From the sequence record KX467643.1: DNA of 39,399 nt; one strand, written 5' to 3'. Numbering within the stretch: the first letter of the stretch is position 1; every line of letters begins with the position of its first letter. Of the stretch, positions 1 through 39,399 are shown in pieces. The translations under genes were made by a program, and so were the position numbers. The notes beneath the pieces were generated by a model, which saw only the letters and a list, made by a program, of their open reading frames with translations, had not been told where the DNA came from and did no database searches.

Positions 1-459
1 TATCTATATAATATAAGAGAGAAATTGTATAAGTCGTATTTCATACAATTACGTCGTATAACGTATTAGACACGGATACGTCTTATATCTTATAAGACAT
101 TGATATGTCTTATATCTTATACGTATTTCTTACGTCTTATATTCGTACTTCTTACCCCTTACTTCTTTCCTCTTATATTATATAGATATATTCAATACCC
201 CCTATATTCGTTCTTCTTTGAATTTTTCTCGTACCACTTACTTCATATTTGTTATATCATTCTCCTTGCTTCACTCATTCGTTCCCCGTTCGTCCTTTCT
301 TCACTCCTCTTTCTTAACTCGTACTTTCCCTTTCTTAATTCGTCCTTACTACTTACGCCATTCTGAATACTACACTCATTCGTTCTCGTTTTTAACTCGT
401 CTTTTCTCGTTCGTTTTCGTTCGTCTTACTTCACTCGTTCTTTTTTTATTTTCCGTTTT
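1..459. repeat. Left inverted terminal repeat (459 bp)
   Basis: 1-459 matches the reverse complement of 38941-39399 in the stretches compared; identity stops after ...TTTTCCGTTTT at 459. Typical of linear lipothrixvirus/rudivirus genomes. Confidence 0.95.
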
Positions 460-4640: not shown

Positions 4641-4994
4641 TTATTCAAGTAATATTTTCTTTTTTCTGTTTGTTTCTGCATTTGTTTCGAATTTCTCTAC
4701 ATATTTGAATAATTTCTCATATTTTTCTACTATTTTCAGCATTGCTTTAATGTCTTCTAACGCACTCGCAGGGAACGACACGCTGTTGGTTGGCTTTTGT
4801 CCATGCATTGAAATTAATACGTTAACGTTGTTCTTATCGTCTTTGTATGCTATAAAACCTAGTGATAGTTGTTCGCCCTCGTACACGTCAAACCTGCTAA
4901 ATCTTTTCTGTGATTTCGTGAATTCTTCTACCCATTTATCAATTTCGGTTTTTAGCTCATCTGTTCTGTCTTGTTTCACTTCTTGTTTTGCCAT
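4641..4994 (-). CDS. Hypothetical protein, 117 aa, possible PC4-like ssDNA-binding fold
   Basis: Strand-strand-strand-helix pattern (LSLGFIAY..VNVLISMH..SVSFPASALEDI); GGGGT RBS. Confidence 0.75.
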   Translation of the reverse strand: MAKQEVKQDRTDELKTEIDKWVEEFTKSQKRFSRFDVYEGEQLSLGFIAYKDDKNNVNVLISMHGQKPTNSVSFPASALEDIKAMLKIVEKYEKLFKYVEKFETNAETNRKKKILLE

Positions 4995-5000
4995 TTATTT

Positions 5001-5567
5001 TTACCCCTTTTTCGTTTTCGTTAATGCTTCATATTGCGTCTTTAATTCTTCAAGTCTTGAAGGGTGTACTAGTGTTACCATGGGCTGTGGGTAATCCGAT
5101 TGTTGTAATGCTACACCTACAATTACGGCACCGTTTTTCAGCTTCGGTATTACACTTCTTAATAGGCTATAATAGACTCCTTGAGATGTTGAGAACAAGT
5201 ACACCTCCTTTTTATGGTTATTTACTTCCTTTATTAGGTCGATTGGTATGGTCTGATTGTTTGTGATCTCTTTGATTAGTTTTTGTTCTAATTTACTGTC
5301 GTCTATGACGTACCCGTCTATATATGACACTTGTGCTGGTTCATTACTGTTCTTTAGTATCACGTCTCTGATTTCTACTTTTTTGATTACCAGTAAATGC
5401 CATAAGTAGTTTTTCAAGTTTTCCCTTTGGAATGGTAATGTAAACTCATCACTTTTTGCTTCTTCAACTAGTTCAACTTTTTGTGTTTCTGTGTTTGCTA
5501 TTTCAACATTTTCTTCATTTACTTCTTCTTTTAACTCCTCTTTTATTTTATCTTTTGAACTTACCAT
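5001..5567 (-). CDS. 188-aa protein, candidate OB-fold SSB (phi29 gp5-like)
   Basis: GGAGGCG RBS; acidic N-terminal tail; VEIRDVI and LFSTSQGVYYSL resemble the phi29-type SSB pattern. Confidence 0.75.
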   Translation of the reverse strand: MVSSKDKIKEELKEEVNEENVEIANTETQKVELVEEAKSDEFTLPFQRENLKNYLWHLLVIKKVEIRDVILKNSNEPAQVSYIDGYVIDDSKLEQKLIKEITNNQTIPIDLIKEVNNHKKEVYLFSTSQGVYYSLLRSVIPKLKNGAVIVGVALQQSDYPQPMVTLVHPSRLEELKTQYEALTKTKKG

Positions 5568-5791
5568 TGTTTAATCGCCTCCTTTATCTCTTCAGGGTAT
5601 GAGTCATACAATTCGCAAAATTCTAAAAAAATTCTCTCACTTTGACTTAACGCCTCAAGGGGTAACCCTTGAGGATTTACTATTTTTTGACATTCATCAA
5701 ACGCGGGCATTTTTGTTCTATCATAAATTGTAGCACAATTGATATTTAAATTTTTCTGTATGCGTTGGTTGTCTTCATTAATGAGTTTCAT
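5561..5791 (-). CDS. Hypothetical protein, 76 aa
   Basis: Overlaps the next start codon; plausible composition. Confidence 0.7.
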   Translation of the reverse strand: MKLINEDNQRIQKNLNINCATIYDRTKMPAFDECQKIVNPQGLPLEALSQSERIFLEFCELYDSYPEEIKEAIKQW

Positions 5792-5848
5792 GGGAAGAAA
5801 TATTATTTGAAACTTGAAAAAAACTAATGATAAAAAAAGAGAAATGAA

Positions 5849-6013
5849 TTATGCTCCTCTTCTTTGGAGATATTCTTCTAAAGCTTCTTTAATTACGTCA
5901 TTAACTCTTCTATCATGTTCTGCACAATAGACTTTTAGACGTTTTTTTAGAGACTTAGGGATGTAAATTCCAAAAGATACCTTTTCATCTTCTTTTTCTT
6001 CTTGTTCTGTCAT
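5849..6013 (-). CDS. svtR: Ribbon-helix-helix transcription regulator, SvtR (SIRV1 ORF56b)-like, 54 aa; not in the ORF track
   Basis: Translation MTEQEEKEDEKVSFGIYIPKSLKKRLKVYCAEHDRRVNDVIKEALEEYLQRRGA; the FGIY...LK.RLKVYCA...EEYLQ+R pattern matches SvtR as recalled; GGTGA RBS and own promoter. Confidence 0.85.
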   Translation of the reverse strand: MTEQEEKEDEKVSFGIYIPKSLKKRLKVYCAEHDRRVNDVIKEALEEYLQRRGA

Positions 6014-6046
6014 TTTCTCACCTAGGTTGTATTTAGTATTAATCGA

Positions 6047-6064
6047 TATTTAAAGCTTTTTCTA
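6047..6064 (-). promoter_or_regulatory. BRE-TATA promoter of the svtR-like gene
   Basis: TAGAAAAAGCTTTAAATA on the minus strand, about 34 nt upstream of the ATG. Confidence 0.7.
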
Positions 6065-6148
6065 AAAATAAGTTTAGAAGAAAGATGGAAAGAGAAGAGA
6101 GTAAAGAAACAAATTTTTTATCGAAAAATAGAAGAGTAGAAGTTTATC

Positions 6149-6162
6149 GAAAAATTTAAATA
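6149..6162 (+). promoter_or_regulatory. Strong early-type BRE-TATA promoter
   Basis: GAAAAATTTAAATA, 24 nt upstream of ATG 6186. Confidence 0.8.
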
Positions 6163-6176
6163 CCCGTTTTATATAT

Positions 6177-6923
6177 ATGTTGTTAATGCACGGTTTAGAA
6201 GTAAAACAAATGAAGATACTTTATAAGTTACCTAAAGTTTTTTTGACACCCGATTTAAATAAATTTTCTATCACAAGAAACTTTGCAGATTGTTTTTATT
6301 ACGAATCACATTCCGGACTAACGAAAGAAGGTTGTGTGATATTTAATGGTGAAATCAGAAGGACACGTGGAATCTTCTATACACCAATACCGCCCGCTTT
6401 TGAAATATCTTACAGAAGGAAAATGATAAGTGATGAAGCAGATATTAAACTAATATTAGATAGGATTAGTCTTGCTGGTGCTACTCTAAATACAGCATCG
6501 TTTCTAATTAAATGGGATAATTATGGATTTAAGCTTTACGATAAGTTCATCAAAGGAGGAATGTATGAGTTTCCTTTACTGTTTAGTCAAGGACATCTAT
6601 ATGTTTACAACATCCCTAGGGTGAGGGAGGCATATAGGATTATCTATGAAAACGATAACCAAAAGGAGGAAATTGATAGTGAGATGTTTGAAGAGATTAA
6701 CGAATTTAGCGTATACAATCATGCTATCAAGTTTGATAAGAAAGTGCTGAAATTAAAAGAATTGTACGTTTCACCTGGTCAAGGAGTAGTCATATATACA
6801 CTAGATGACGTCACACTTGTTTCAGAGTCACAAGACCACGAGAAAGTCGAGAAATTTGTGTATAAGAATTCGTGGATACTGTTTTCACATCGTGCCCCAC
6901 GTAACCAAGATCAAAGAGATTAA
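6177..6923 (+). CDS. acrIIIB1: Anti-CRISPR AcrIIIB1 homologue (SIRV2 gp48 family; type III-B inhibitor)
   Basis: EVKQ..LP.VFL...LNKF.I.+NF..C.YY.S.SG.T.EGCV, YEFPL, QGHL.VYN.P, YNH...F.K.VL, S.DH and W.LFSH..PR match the AcrIIIB1 sequence as recalled; about 245 aa; true start probably 6186. Confidence 0.85.
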   Translation: MLLMHGLEVKQMKILYKLPKVFLTPDLNKFSITRNFADCFYYESHSGLTKEGCVIFNGEIRRTRGIFYTPIPPAFEISYRRKMISDEADIKLILDRISLAGATLNTASFLIKWDNYGFKLYDKFIKGGMYEFPLLFSQGHLYVYNIPRVREAYRIIYENDNQKEEIDSEMFEEINEFSVYNHAIKFDKKVLKLKELYVSPGQGVVIYTLDDVTLVSESQDHEKVEKFVYKNSWILFSHRAPRNQDQRD

Positions 6924-6974
6924 CATTTTTTTATGATTCTTCTTAATCGAGAAAAATGTTTCTAGAGATTTGTC

Positions 6975-6988
6975 GAAAAATTTAAATA
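6975..6988 (+). promoter_or_regulatory. Strong early-type BRE-TATA promoter
   Basis: GAAAAATTTAAATA, identical to 6149-6162; 21 nt before ATG 7009. Confidence 0.8.
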
Positions 6989-7008
6989 TTTATTTTGTGT
7001 ATTTTTAA

Positions 7009-7239
7009 ATGATAAACATGGGTGGGAAAACATTAATTATAAATTGGGAAAACCCGTTAAATAGAGATGCATATACGGAAATAGGAAAATTGATGGTGTT
7101 AGTTTTGCCGTATGTAATTAATATTGAGATTGTAGATACTGAAGGTTGTATAATGGAAATAGATGGTACAATAGAAGATGAGATAAAGGAGTTAAGTAGA
7201 TTCTTAAAGTATGTTGAAGTGTCTTTTGCAGAAGAATAA
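7009..7239 (+). CDS. Small acidic early protein, 76 aa, candidate anti-defence gene
   Basis: Own promoter, T-rich terminator, next to acrIIIB1. Confidence 0.75.
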   Translation: MINMGGKTLIINWENPLNRDAYTEIGKLMVLVLPYVINIEIVDTEGCIMEIDGTIEDEIKELSRFLKYVEVSFAEE

Positions 7240-7300
7240 AAAATAAGCTATCCAATTTTTTTATAATATAAAAAGAGAAAAATAAAAAAAATAAATTAAC

Positions 7301-7600
7301 TTACTCAATTTCGATTTCTGCATTTATTGCTTCTGCTGTTTGTTCAAGTACTTTTAGTCCATTTGCATATTTTTCAAATCGTTCATTTAATATCTCATCC
7401 GCATTTTCTTTGGCATTTTTTGTTTCATATGAACTGATTGTCTCTATGTAGCCTACAAACTTTTGTTGTTTGTCTTCATACACCAAATCGTTACCTTTCA
7501 CATTTATTACCGCTTTCAATTCAGCCTCAAGTGTTATACTGTAGTCTCTTGTATTTATTTTTAGTTTGTACGAAAGGGTTTTTTGTTTTACTTCCACCAT
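7301..7600 (-). CDS. 99-aa early protein, candidate anti-CRISPR; paralogue of 8165-8452
   Basis: Own promoter at 7631-7644; visible alignment to 8165-8452. Confidence 0.8.
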   Translation of the reverse strand: MVEVKQKTLSYKLKINTRDYSITLEAELKAVINVKGNDLVYEDKQQKFVGYIETISSYETKNAKENADEILNERFEKYANGLKVLEQTAEAINAEIEIE

Positions 7601-7630
7601 TTTTGGTCACTTATATATTGGACAAATAGA

Positions 7631-7644
7631 TATTTAAATTTTTC
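7631..7644 (-). promoter_or_regulatory. Strong early-type BRE-TATA promoter
   Basis: GAAAAATTTAAATA on the minus strand (third identical copy). Confidence 0.8.
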
Positions 7645-7755
7645 TGTGTCTTTCTTCTTTTCGTTTTTTCTAACTAAAAAAAACGTGAAAAATTCCATAC
7701 GATAAAAATATTATCAGAAACATGAGAACAATTAGAGATAAAAAAAAGGAGAAAA

Positions 7756-8028
7756 TTATCTTTCATAATTAGAATATATAAGATCTATAAGGGGTGATAT
7801 CTCTTTTTCATGTTTTTTTAGTATGTCAAGGACATACCATTGATCATTATAGTCTTCAGGTTTTGCTATTATAAACAATTTTACTAATTTTTCCATAAAT
7901 TGAATCCCTTTTATGTGTCCAAATCTTTCATACCACCACTGTATGAATTCAACATTTTCTGTAGACATATAAAAAAATTTATCATTAATTTTAACATATT
8001 TTTCCCCAAATTCTATCTGTTCATTCAT
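7756..8028 (-). CDS. 90-aa early protein, candidate anti-defence gene
   Basis: Own promoter (GAGAAATCTTTAAATA, 8063-8078) and GGGGA RBS. Confidence 0.8.
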   Translation of the reverse strand: MNEQIEFGEKYVKINDKFFYMSTENVEFIQWWYERFGHIKGIQFMEKLVKLFIIAKPEDYNDQWYVLDILKKHEKEISPLIDLIYSNYER

Positions 8029-8062
8029 ACTTCTATCCCCTAATTATCATTAGAAAAATAGA

Positions 8063-8078
8063 TATTTAAAGATTTCTC
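8063..8078 (-). promoter_or_regulatory. Early-type BRE-TATA promoter
   Basis: Shares TTTAAATATCTATTT with the promoter at 7624-7638. Confidence 0.7.
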
Positions 8079-8164
8079 TATTTTTTGATTCATGAAAAAA
8101 TGGACAACTTTCCAGATAATATCCAAAACTTGAGAAAAATTATGTATAAAAAAAAGAAATTGAC

Positions 8165-8452
8165 TTAATCAACTTCTATCATTAGTCCTGTTTTTTCCAA
8201 TTCTTCAAATCCTCTTTTTATTTGTTCTATTCTTTTGTCCATTTCCATAGCAATTACATTTATTTGCTCTTTTATTAATTCGTGTCTTATTGTCTCTAAA
8301 ATTCCTACCTCTTTTATTAAATTTATGCTGTGTTGTACTTCACTGTTTTTTACGTTGAAGACCACTTTCGTTTCACAATCCAAAAAAACTATTCCGTTTG
8401 TTGAATTTACCTTAGCTTTACACTCAAGCTTTTTGGATGTTATTTCCGCCAT
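8165..8452 (-). CDS. 95-aa early protein, paralogue of 7301-7600
   Basis: Own promoter (GAGAAACCTTTATATA, 8483-8498); same AATATATAAGTGACC leader as 7301-7600. Confidence 0.8.
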   Translation of the reverse strand: MAEITSKKLECKAKVNSTNGIVFLDCETKVVFNVKNSEVQHSINLIKEVGILETIRHELIKEQINVIAMEMDKRIEQIKRGFEELEKTGLMIEVD

Positions 8453-8922
8453 TTTGGGTCACTTATATATTCTAATTATATATATATAAAGGTTTCTCTA
8501 TCTTTCTTTTTATCGAATTTTCGTTTTCAATTATGTAGAAGGAGCTGGAATATTATTTCAAAATTGAAAAAAAGTTTGAATACTAATTTATTCACTCAAT
8601 TTAAGGAAACAAAAAAGAATTCAAACAAAAAATCTATTGTTTCAAATACTATTTCAATGACTTTATAATCTATACATAAAAATAATCAGAGTGTAATGTA
8701 GTGAATTGGATAAATTTCTGTTAAAAGAGTTTTCACATTTGGGCTAACCCAAACGACAAAAGTTTTTTCTTTAAAAATGATTTTACGCCCTTCTTTTGCC
8801 TAAAACTTAGGCGGGATAAGGGGAAAAATTGCAAGTTAAGGGTTTAAAAATATTTCTAGTAAAATAACGAGTGTTGTTAAAAAAGATTTTTGTATCCAGA
8901 GTGAAACTAATACTATCTTCTT

Positions 8923-10885: not shown

Positions 10886-10953
10886 GTTTTGTCACTATAC
10901 TATTAACATATAAGTTTATAAATTTGTGATATCATAATTTATGTAGAGTAAAC

Positions 10954-13617: not shown

Positions 13618-13702
13618 ATGTCACTAATAAAATTATTACATCACAAATTTAAAAACTTTGTATTACCCACAAGTTTAAAAATGTGATATCACAATTATAA
13701 AT

Positions 13703-14927: not shown

Positions 14928-15290
14928 ATGGAAGAAAATATTGAAAAGGAAAAAATCGAACTACCTGAAGGCAACAATAAATCAGAAACAGAGAAATACA
15001 TAGAAGACCTGATAAATTCCATAGAAAGTGAACTACCAAAACATGTAAATTATACAACAGGAATAATTGTTGACGACGAAAGGAATCTGTTAATTATAAA
15101 GAACGGGAAGTTATATGTAGGTAGAGATGAAGATAGTGTAAAGGAAATAAAAGAATACATGAAAGATGCTAATGCGGGATATCTGATCAATGCTTTATAT
15201 GTCTTAAAGCAAATGTTGCAATCCTATAAGGATTTATGGAGTGGAAAAATAGAAAGAGAAGCGAAAAAGGCATTAAACGAAATAATCTAA
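14928..15290 (+). CDS. Acidic 120-aa protein, monocistronic with strong promoter
   Basis: Leaderless ATG 23 nt after the TATA element. Confidence 0.8.
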   Translation: MEENIEKEKIELPEGNNKSETEKYIEDLINSIESELPKHVNYTTGIIVDDERNLLIIKNGKLYVGRDEDSVKEIKEYMKDANAGYLINALYVLKQMLQSYKDLWSGKIEREAKKALNEII

Positions 15291-20575: not shown

Positions 20576-20710
20576 ATTTCCTCTTAGATAATATGTACAA
20601 ACAAACCTTTAAAATATAGGGATTCATGTTTCACTCGGATTGTTTTATCGTACATAGAATGTGATAGCACAAATTTATAAGTTTGAATGACAAAAGGATA
20701 ATGATAATAG

Positions 20711-38940: not shown

Positions 38941-39399
38941 AAAACGGAAAATAAAAAAAGAACGAGTGAAGTAAGACGAACGAAAACGAACGAGAAAAGA
39001 CGAGTTAAAAACGAGAACGAATGAGTGTAGTATTCAGAATGGCGTAAGTAGTAAGGACGAATTAAGAAAGGGAAAGTACGAGTTAAGAAAGAGGAGTGAA
39101 GAAAGGACGAACGGGGAACGAATGAGTGAAGCAAGGAGAATGATATAACAAATATGAAGTAAGTGGTACGAGAAAAATTCAAAGAAGAACGAATATAGGG
39201 GGTATTGAATATATCTATATAATATAAGAGGAAAGAAGTAAGGGGTAAGAAGTACGAATATAAGACGTAAGAAATACGTATAAGATATAAGACATATCAA
39301 TGTCTTATAAGATATAAGACGTATCCGTGTCTAATACGTTATACGACGTAATTGTATGAAATACGACTTATACAATTTCTCTCTTATATTATATAGATA
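38941..39399. repeat. Right inverted terminal repeat (459 bp)
   Basis: Reverse complement of 1-459. Confidence 0.95.

Follow-up and report, generated by a model that had tools for sequence, protein, structure and literature searches.

A shared regulatory block at seven promoters of the lipothrixvirus SIFV2 and its probable early anti-defence gene island

SIFV2 is a linear betalipothrixvirus (lipothrixvirus) with a 39399-bp genome (KX467643). The window matches this record with 100% identity over its full length, and the 69 annotated genes of the record served as the gene map. The nearest other isolate is SIFV (AF440571), with 85.6% identity across the studied stretch. We inspected the upstream regions of all 69 genes and anchored promoters on the TATA box. 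The genes gp11 to gp17 lie near one genome end, and their seven promoters, found within 5735-8504, have in common a regulatory block of about 27-30 nucleotides (nt). We regard this stretch, with high confidence, as the early anti-defence gene island of SIFV2. The blocks and genes are listed below; bits refer to the promoter matrix described further on, and distances are counted to the ATG from the TATA box's first T.

5735..5764, minus strand: regulatory block of gp11 (downstream gp10 and gp09); exact 14-mer; 29.4 bits; 40 nt to the ATG at 5710
5561-5710, minus strand: gp11, 49-amino-acid (aa) short form, ADG.60, candidate regulator
6039..6068, minus strand: regulatory block of gp12; variant GAAAAAGCTTTAAATA with an extra base in the TFB-recognition element (BRE); 23.6 bits; 41 nt to the ATG; GGTGAG Shine-Dalgarno-like leader
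5849..6013, minus strand: gp12, 54 aa, ADG.59 ('ADa'), ribbon-helix-helix (RHH; Arc/SvtR-like) protein, candidate repressor
6141..6170, plus strand: regulatory block of gp13; exact 14-mer; 28.1 bits; 31 nt to the ATG at 6186, leaderless
6186..6923 (annotated start 6177), plus strand: gp13, homologue of the AcrIIIB1 (AcrIIIB1/AcrIA4) family
6967..6996, plus strand: regulatory block of gp14; exact 14-mer; 26.8 bits; 28 nt to the ATG, leaderless
7009..7239, plus strand: gp14, 76 aa, ADG.58, predicted anti-defence gene
7623..7652, minus strand: regulatory block of gp15; exact 14-mer; 30.9 bits; 38 nt to the ATG
7301..7600, minus strand: gp15, 99 aa, ADG.56, AcrIA by published experiment
8055..8084, minus strand: regulatory block of gp16; variant GAAATCTTTAAATA; 31.4 bits
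7756..8028, minus strand: gp16, 90 aa, ADG.57, predicted anti-defence gene
8475..8504, minus strand: regulatory block of gp17; variant GAAACCTTTATATA; 26.1 bits; 38 nt to the ATG
8165..8452, minus strand: gp17, 95 aa, ADG.56, paralogue of gp15
5001-5567, minus strand: gp10, pADG.03 in the supplement of PMC11065993
4641-4994, minus strand: gp09, pADG.09 in the same supplement

The 14-mer of the list is GAAAAATTTAAATA. In the genome-wide word count it has four exact copies, at 5743-5756(-), 6149-6162(+), 6975-6988(+) and 7631-7644(-), compared to 0.02 expected from dinucleotide shuffles, and none of the 100 shuffles reached four. With up to two mismatches there are 14 genome sites (4.0 expected). 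An earlier sequence-only reading of this DNA had placed the word before 6186, 7009 and 7600, where the three exact copies from 6149-6162(+) onward indeed lie; the copy at 5743-5756(-), which falls within the annotated long form of gp11, was absent from its list. The variants that it reported before 6013, 8028 and 8452 are also real: they are the GAAAAAGCTTTAAATA, GAAATCTTTAAATA and GAAACCTTTATATA of gp12, gp16 and gp17, and their flanks are the same as those of the exact copies. The 14-mer forms the core of the longer block, whose consensus is atA.aGAAAa.TTTAAATATctaTTtt. This core couples an A/G-rich BRE with a consensus TATA box, and such a pairing has been reported as the strongest binder of archaeal initiation factors.

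A 30-nt matrix was built from the seven island promoters and run genome-wide on SIFV2. The seven promoters score 23.6-31.4 bits and the best other site of the genome 11.4 bits. When each promoter was left out of the matrix in turn, six of the seven scored 14-27 bits. A consensus TATA box after a purine-rich BRE, at promoter distance (28-42 nt from the ATG), is found at the seven island promoters and also before gp23, gp28, gp69, gp07 and gp60, whereas the shared surrounding sequence described in PMC11065993 is found at the promoters of gp11-gp17. The promoters of gp28, gp23 and gp69 do not have this surrounding sequence and their scores are within the genome background; they are ordinary archaeal promoters outside the island class. 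These three are the further variants that had been proposed before 12683 (gp23), 14928 (gp28) and 38746 (gp69). They have only the generic A-rich BRE and TATA box in common with the island and, at 10.5, 1.7 and 9.6 bits, respectively, score no better than unrelated sites. Since gp60 (methyltransferase; 8.2 bits) and gp07 (3.9 bits) have 14-mer variants as good, variants outside the island do not discriminate.

The matrix transfers to related viruses. In SIFV, which was outside the training set, it finds eight sites of 14-31 bits, before SIFV0012, 0013, 0015, 0016, 0017, 0018, 0019 and 0020; the gp14 block is identical before SIFV0017 and the gp16 block before SIFV0019. In L006, a third SIFV-like virus represented by a metagenomic fragment of 1.7 kb, there are four sites of 15.9-28.6 bits, and each island gene has such a site in front of it. 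Its gene order differs from that of SIFV2, with an ADG.56 homologue followed by an AcrIIIB1 homologue (44% identical to gp13) and then a gp12-like RHH gene. In two more distant relatives, L004 and L005, the block differs in detail, which fits the published statement that the flanks are virus-specific (PMC11065993), and the ADG.56 gene keeps its TATA box and a gp15/gp17-like leader. L005, a metagenomic betalipothrixvirus sequence of 9572 bases, has the same backbone of helicase, island, gp11-gp10-gp09, gp08, gp07, helicase and Cas4; its island consists of one ADG.56 homologue together with two small genes of 103 and 131 aa that are unrelated, and an AcrIIIB1 homologue was not called there.

The distance that separates the ATG from the first T in the TATA box divides the promoters into two groups. 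The short group (28-32 nt) includes gp14, gp13 if it starts at 6186, and the generic promoters of gp23, gp28 and gp69, and this spacing implies leaderless transcripts. The long group (38-42 nt) includes gp11, gp12, gp15, gp16 and gp17, where a GGTGA/GTGAC/GGGGA box precedes the ATG by about 6-9 nt; the leader ATATATAAGTGACCAAAAATG is common to gp15 and gp17. Counted from the TATA box (first T), the annotated ATG of gp13 at 6177 comes after just 22 nt, and the PHROG 6092 profile starts at residue 4 of the protein. For both reasons 6186 is the better choice, and gp13 probably starts there, as the sequence-only reading had it. The annotated open reading frame of gp11 (76 aa, 5561-5791) holds its own island-type promoter. 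Its real product is probably the 49-aa form from 5710, and PMC11065993 re-annotated the gene to 5561-5710. Below this promoter gp11, gp10 and gp09 form a co-oriented and abutting gene run (4641..5710, minus strand). In the gp16 promoter AAAATAGA and TCTATTTT flank the BRE and TATA box as an 8-bp inverted repeat.

The genome and its promoters have been studied before. Bhoobalan-Chitty et al. 2024 (Nat Commun 15:3699, PMC11065993) reported that the transcription of archaeal anti-CRISPR (acr) genes sets in immediately after infection and is driven by a conserved regulatory sequence whose BRE and TATA core is strong, and predicted 354 anti-defence genes from that sequence. SIFV2 (KX467643) was selected there for validation, and gp09, gp10, gp14, gp15, gp16 and gp17 were cloned. 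The test host was S. islandicus LAL14/1 delta-cas6(I-D), in which only I-A and III-B Cmr-alpha are active. In this screen, which used a weak promoter, an effect was seen from gp15 only, and gp15 was also expressed from the strong araS-SD promoter. The protein inhibits subtype I-A and did not rescue a mutant also lacking acrIIIB1, so gp15 is I-A specific. Supplementary Data 1 of that paper lists gp13 as AcrIIIB1, gp15 and gp17 as ADG.56, gp16 as ADG.57 and gp14 as ADG.58, with gp12 (ADG.59) and gp11 (ADG.60) as candidate regulators and gp10 and gp09 as low-probability candidates. A 2024 preprint of the same group (bioRxiv 10.1101/2024.04.02.587611) reported that the AcrIIIB1 family also inhibits I-A (AcrIIIB1/AcrIA4), and that in SIFV and SIFV2 the AcrIIIB1 homologues are flanked by other I-A inhibitors.

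The sequence-only reading had called these genes uncharacterised and had taken their shared early promoter as the mark of inhibitors of CRISPR, toxin-antitoxin or other defences. Its logic is sound and is the published method, and gp15 has been shown to act against I-A. However, one of its candidates, gp28, has to be dropped, and gp14, gp16 and gp17 were negative against I-A and III-B, so that their role is still a prediction. The genes are not new either, as the same ones were predicted from the same promoters on the same genome in PMC11065993. The reading had itself suspected that some were described in SIFV-like viruses, and that paper names SIFV2 gp09-gp17. The promoter-based prediction for SIFV2 is thus correct in outline, was already published in 2024 and is not new. 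The additions of the present analysis are a ranking of sites by the matrix over the whole genome, the use of the matrix on SIFV and on a metagenomic relative, the division of the transcripts into a leaderless and a leadered group, the profile of mosaic divergence, and modelled folds for gp15 and gp28.

The gp13 protein is homologous over its full length to SIRV2 gp48/ORF249, the founding AcrIIIB1 (tblastn, 41% identity, 95% coverage, E 4e-58). Inhibition of type III-B and I-A has been shown in the literature for SIRV2 gp48, and on this homology it is predicted for gp13. The gp15 and gp17 proteins are 30% identical (BLASTP, E 1e-9) and both belong to PHROG 18494; the gp17 orthologue SIFV0020 is 58% identical. 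A HMMER search of 1.8 billion representatives with a gp15 and gp17 profile returned only seven small family members, including three SIFV copies and three metagenomic ones, and the ADG.56 family alignment has eight members. The AlphaFold2 model of gp15 (pLDDT 95, pTM 0.81) has three long antiparallel beta strands followed by a 35-residue helix. Its best matches among solved structures are LptE-like lipoproteins (Foldseek E 7e-3, TM below 0.5, VIA Z 7.7), which is background level, and no fold was assigned. AcrIF24 was considered as a fold match (Z 4.9) and rejected as noise, and no AcrID1 structure is among the fold matches. The AcrID1 profile NCBIfam NF033952 (cut-off 30 bits) does not match gp14, gp15, gp16, gp17 or gp28 at E<=1; the control, SIRV2 gp46, scores 103.7 bits (E 5e-30).

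Among isolates, gp14 and gp16 are found only in SIFV and SIFV2 (97.4% and 96.7% identical, respectively). The ESM Atlas model of gp14 (pLDDT 0.82) resembles ferredoxin-like domains of the ACT/NikR_C/TM1266 type (TM 0.63-0.67), and the ACT-like resemblance of this model may serve as a lead only. For gp16, a tblastn search of the genomes of 185,579 species found no host homologue at E<=1e-3, although a single-protein query reaches close relatives only and the result is not evidence of absence; PMC11065993 notes host homologues for SIFV0019, the gp16 counterpart. The top scores of the gp16 Atlas search (0.87-0.90) came from mixed families and were not used, and neither the PDB nor NCBIfam gave a lead for this protein. 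Word-index homologue searches with gp15 and gp16 returned the query alone, and PDB sequence searches with gp13, gp14, gp15, gp16 and gp28 gave nothing significant. The gp12 protein matches PHROG 582, an Arc-like repressor (E 3.9e-11). Its identification with the cell-cycle RHH regulator aCcr1 was rejected, since the SIFV homologue given in the aCcr1 paper is SIFV0029, which is another gene.

Outside the island, two genes had been drawn into the same argument. The first, gp23, is a DUF1874 homologue (AFV3-109 (2j6b), E 4.5e-42; STIV B116, 8.7e-11; 6scf, 5.8e-9). The recognition of gp13 as AcrIIIB1 and of gp23 as AcrIII-1 in the sequence-only reading therefore holds. The claim that the shared promoter serves gp23 does not, since its promoter is not of the island type. 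The low score agrees with the published finding that the motif is almost never tied to acrIII-1 (prevalence 0.13, PMC11065993), and Supplementary Data 1 enters gp23 as AcrIII-1 by homology alone. The second, gp28 (14928-15290, 120 aa), had been proposed as a defence inhibitor. All betalipothrixviruses have it in synteny, at about 59% identity, and with dozens of metagenomic contigs included the range is 55-64% at the same genome position. This is how a core gene behaves, and not an accessory gene for counter-defence. The shared flanks are missing from its promoter, and gp28, like gp69 and gp60, is absent from Supplementary Data 1. The gp28 model (pLDDT 84) consists of a disordered and acidic N-terminus, one helix, a sheet of four strands and two further helices, and comparison to solved structures gave nothing above Z 5.6 and no informative match. 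Given core-gene conservation and a generic promoter, nothing indicates an anti-defence role for gp28.

We propose the following picture of the island. Each of the promoters of gp12 to gp17 would drive a small single-gene cassette ending in a T-rich tract. The transcripts would be leaderless (gp13 and gp14) or would have a 10-nt leader and a Shine-Dalgarno-like box (gp12, gp15, gp16 and gp17), and a similar leader of 10 nt would be found on the transcript from the gp11 promoter, which probably serves gp10 and gp09 as well. Judging from the published SIRV2 work, the island genes would be transcribed at once on entry and would supply inhibitors of host immunity. These would be gp13, of the AcrIIIB1/AcrIA4 family, against III-B and I-A, and gp15, which is an AcrIA by published experiment, with gp17, gp14 and gp16 as further candidates. 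The shared flanks are probably an operator for a virus-encoded repressor giving later shut-off, for which the RHH protein gp12 or gp11 would be candidates.

This picture can be compared to two known systems. The terminal early genes of SIRV2 (acrID1, acrIIIB1 and aca8), which have the Aca8-associated regulatory sequence, are likewise small and mostly single, each behind a near-identical block of BRE and TATA box. Their expression starts immediately on infection, and repression follows about 1 h afterwards (PMC11065993). An AcrIIIB1 homologue is present in the islands of both viruses. Unlike SIRV2, SIFV2 has neither Aca8 nor an AcrID1 family member, its candidate regulators are the RHH protein gp12 and gp11, its flanks are virus-specific, and the island is near one genome end only. 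In the acr-aca operons of bacteriophages, too, the promoter is strong and early, the inhibitor genes are small and evolve fast, and a small DNA-binding protein linked to them is thought to shut the promoter down. In SIFV2 each inhibitor mostly has a promoter copy to itself, compared to a single one for the operon in phages; the SIFV2 promoter belongs to the archaeal TBP/TFB type, and repression by gp12 or gp11 is putative.

Several points weigh against this picture. The gp12 promoter has a leave-one-out score of just 5.8 bits. Five of the nine genes, namely gp14, gp16, gp17, gp09 and gp10, had no I-A or III-B Cmr-alpha effect in the weak-promoter screen of PMC11065993, and their predicted anti-defence role is guilt by promoter only. 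A search for RNA runs containing the sequence gave none; the early timing is carried over from SIRV2 transcriptomes, and gp12 or gp11 is a putative repressor. Only the gp16 promoter and the corresponding SIFV ones show clear dyad symmetry about the TATA box (12/20 positions); the symmetry is weaker in the gp15 type (11/20) and low in the SIFV2 gp17 promoter (6/20). Part of the symmetry is due to the palindromic TTTAAA, and a dyad-symmetric operator around the TATA box is only weakly suggested.

The comparison to SIFV in 60-nt bins shows a sharply mosaic identity. Two segments, 6561-7280 (the 3' half of gp13 with gp14) and 7701-8120 (gp16 with its promoter), are 98-100% identical to SIFV. The gp15 region (7281-7700) is 44-83% identical and the gp17 region (8181-8480) 58-75%. 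The gp15 and gp17 proteins share 57-58% identity with the SIFV orthologues; their synonymous sites are saturated, and the ratio of nonsynonymous to synonymous divergence (dN/dS) is about 0.2 (gp17 0.21), compared to about 97% identity, a dS of 0.02-0.05 and a dN/dS of 0.3-0.5 for gp14 and gp16. The divergence of gp15 and gp17 beside the near-identical gp14 and gp16 has the signature of an arms race. In addition, SIFV has an 852-bp block between the gp12 and gp13 promoters (SIFV2 6081-6140 versus ~1080-1990 of the SIFV stretch compared) that is missing from SIFV2. It contains SIFV0014 (113 aa), before which no promoter of the island type was found, and SIFV0015, a third copy of ADG.56 that has a 22.7-bit promoter to itself. 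The simplest reading of these sequences, in a comparison of three genomes only, may be an exchange of whole cassettes that carry old and diverged ADG.56 alleles.

It is possible, although somewhat doubtful, that the regulatory blocks have a second role besides that of promoters and act as homology patches for recombination, by which whole cassettes are swapped between co-infecting SIFV-like viruses. Apart from the mosaic identity and the synonymous saturation of gp15 and gp17, the insertion of the SIFV 852-bp block between two promoters and the direct adjacency of ADG.56 and AcrIIIB1 in L006 are in favor of it. However, the comparison covers three genomes, the breakpoints come from 60-nt bins, and one of them (~6560) is inside gp13 and not at a promoter. 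Diversifying selection in place could also contribute to the mosaic, yet the dN/dS of gp17 favors old alleles.

A different task for some of the genes is a little less probable, and on the whole unlikely. Here gp14, gp16 and perhaps gp17 would be early genes for host takeover, transcription or cell-cycle regulation, or the start of replication, and the promoter would mark timing only. All three were negative against I-A and III-B Cmr-alpha (PMC11065993), and gp14 and gp16, unlike gp15 and gp17, are not visibly fast-evolving, with a dN/dS obtained at very low dS. The gp14 model resembles ligand-binding or regulatory ACT/NikR_C domains, and PMC11065993 puts gp11 and gp12, which have the same promoter class, among regulators and not inhibitors. 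However, the published screen used a weak promoter and covered two host systems only, with I-D and Cmr-gamma inactive in the strain. Moreover, gp17 is a clear paralogue of an anti-CRISPR protein, and the confinement of gp14 and gp16 to two viruses is what is typically seen for accessory genes of counter-defence; the near identity of these two genes may stem from recent exchange and not from constraint.

That the repeated word is a generic strong Sulfolobales promoter (BRE plus TTTAAATA), carried by any highly expressed gene and silent on function, is highly improbable: sites with up to two mismatches do precede gp07, gp60, gp23, gp28 and gp69, with the usual spacing of 28-32 nt to the ATG, and the 14-mer alone therefore cannot separate anti-defence genes from others, but about 13 more conserved positions flank it in the seven island promoters and set them 12 bits or more above other genome sites, the block is kept in SIFV and L006 although the genes behind it diverge or rearrange, and the island includes a homologue of a known anti-CRISPR protein (gp13) and an experimentally shown one (gp15).

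Some other features of the genome were observed along with the island promoters. Between the gp17 promoter and gp18 there are about 420 bases (8505-8920) with no annotated gene. They contain a weak promoter-like site of 10.9 bits at 8575(+) and, compared to SIFV, a 108-base indel at ~8541-8600. The two-mismatch matches GAAAAATTCAAAGA at 215-228(-) and 39172-39185(+) are mirror copies, consistent with terminal inverted repeats, and are not island-class promoters. A second and distinct promoter class is marked by the palindrome TGTGATATCACA, which with at most one mismatch has three sites (10925-10936, 13682-13693 and 20660-20671) compared to 0.19 expected. The sites adjoin TATA boxes, namely those of two divergent gene pairs, gp19/gp20 and gp25 (AvtR)/gp26, and that of gp40, and a virus regulator such as AvtR probably has its operator in TGTGATATCACA.

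Returning to the anti-defence island, one may speculate further on its inhibitors. The gp15 and gp17 proteins, together with their diverged counterparts in SIFV and hot-spring metagenomes, could be old specificity alleles of one inhibitor with three strands and a helix, each matched to a different type I Cascade or Cas3 variant and swapped as cassettes by way of the promoter blocks. The gp14 protein, with its ACT-like fold, and gp16 could then be directed at other defences than I-A and III-B, for instance through the binding of a small signalling molecule. We rate this proposal as distinctly unlikely and offer it as a speculation. Since the analysis is already published on this genome, no new principle is added. 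Few anti-CRISPR proteins of archaeal viruses are known, and promoter-guided discovery is currently the main route to more. What would be worth specialist effort are the targets of gp14, gp16 and gp17, and whether the hypervariable ADG.56 cassettes encode different specificities.

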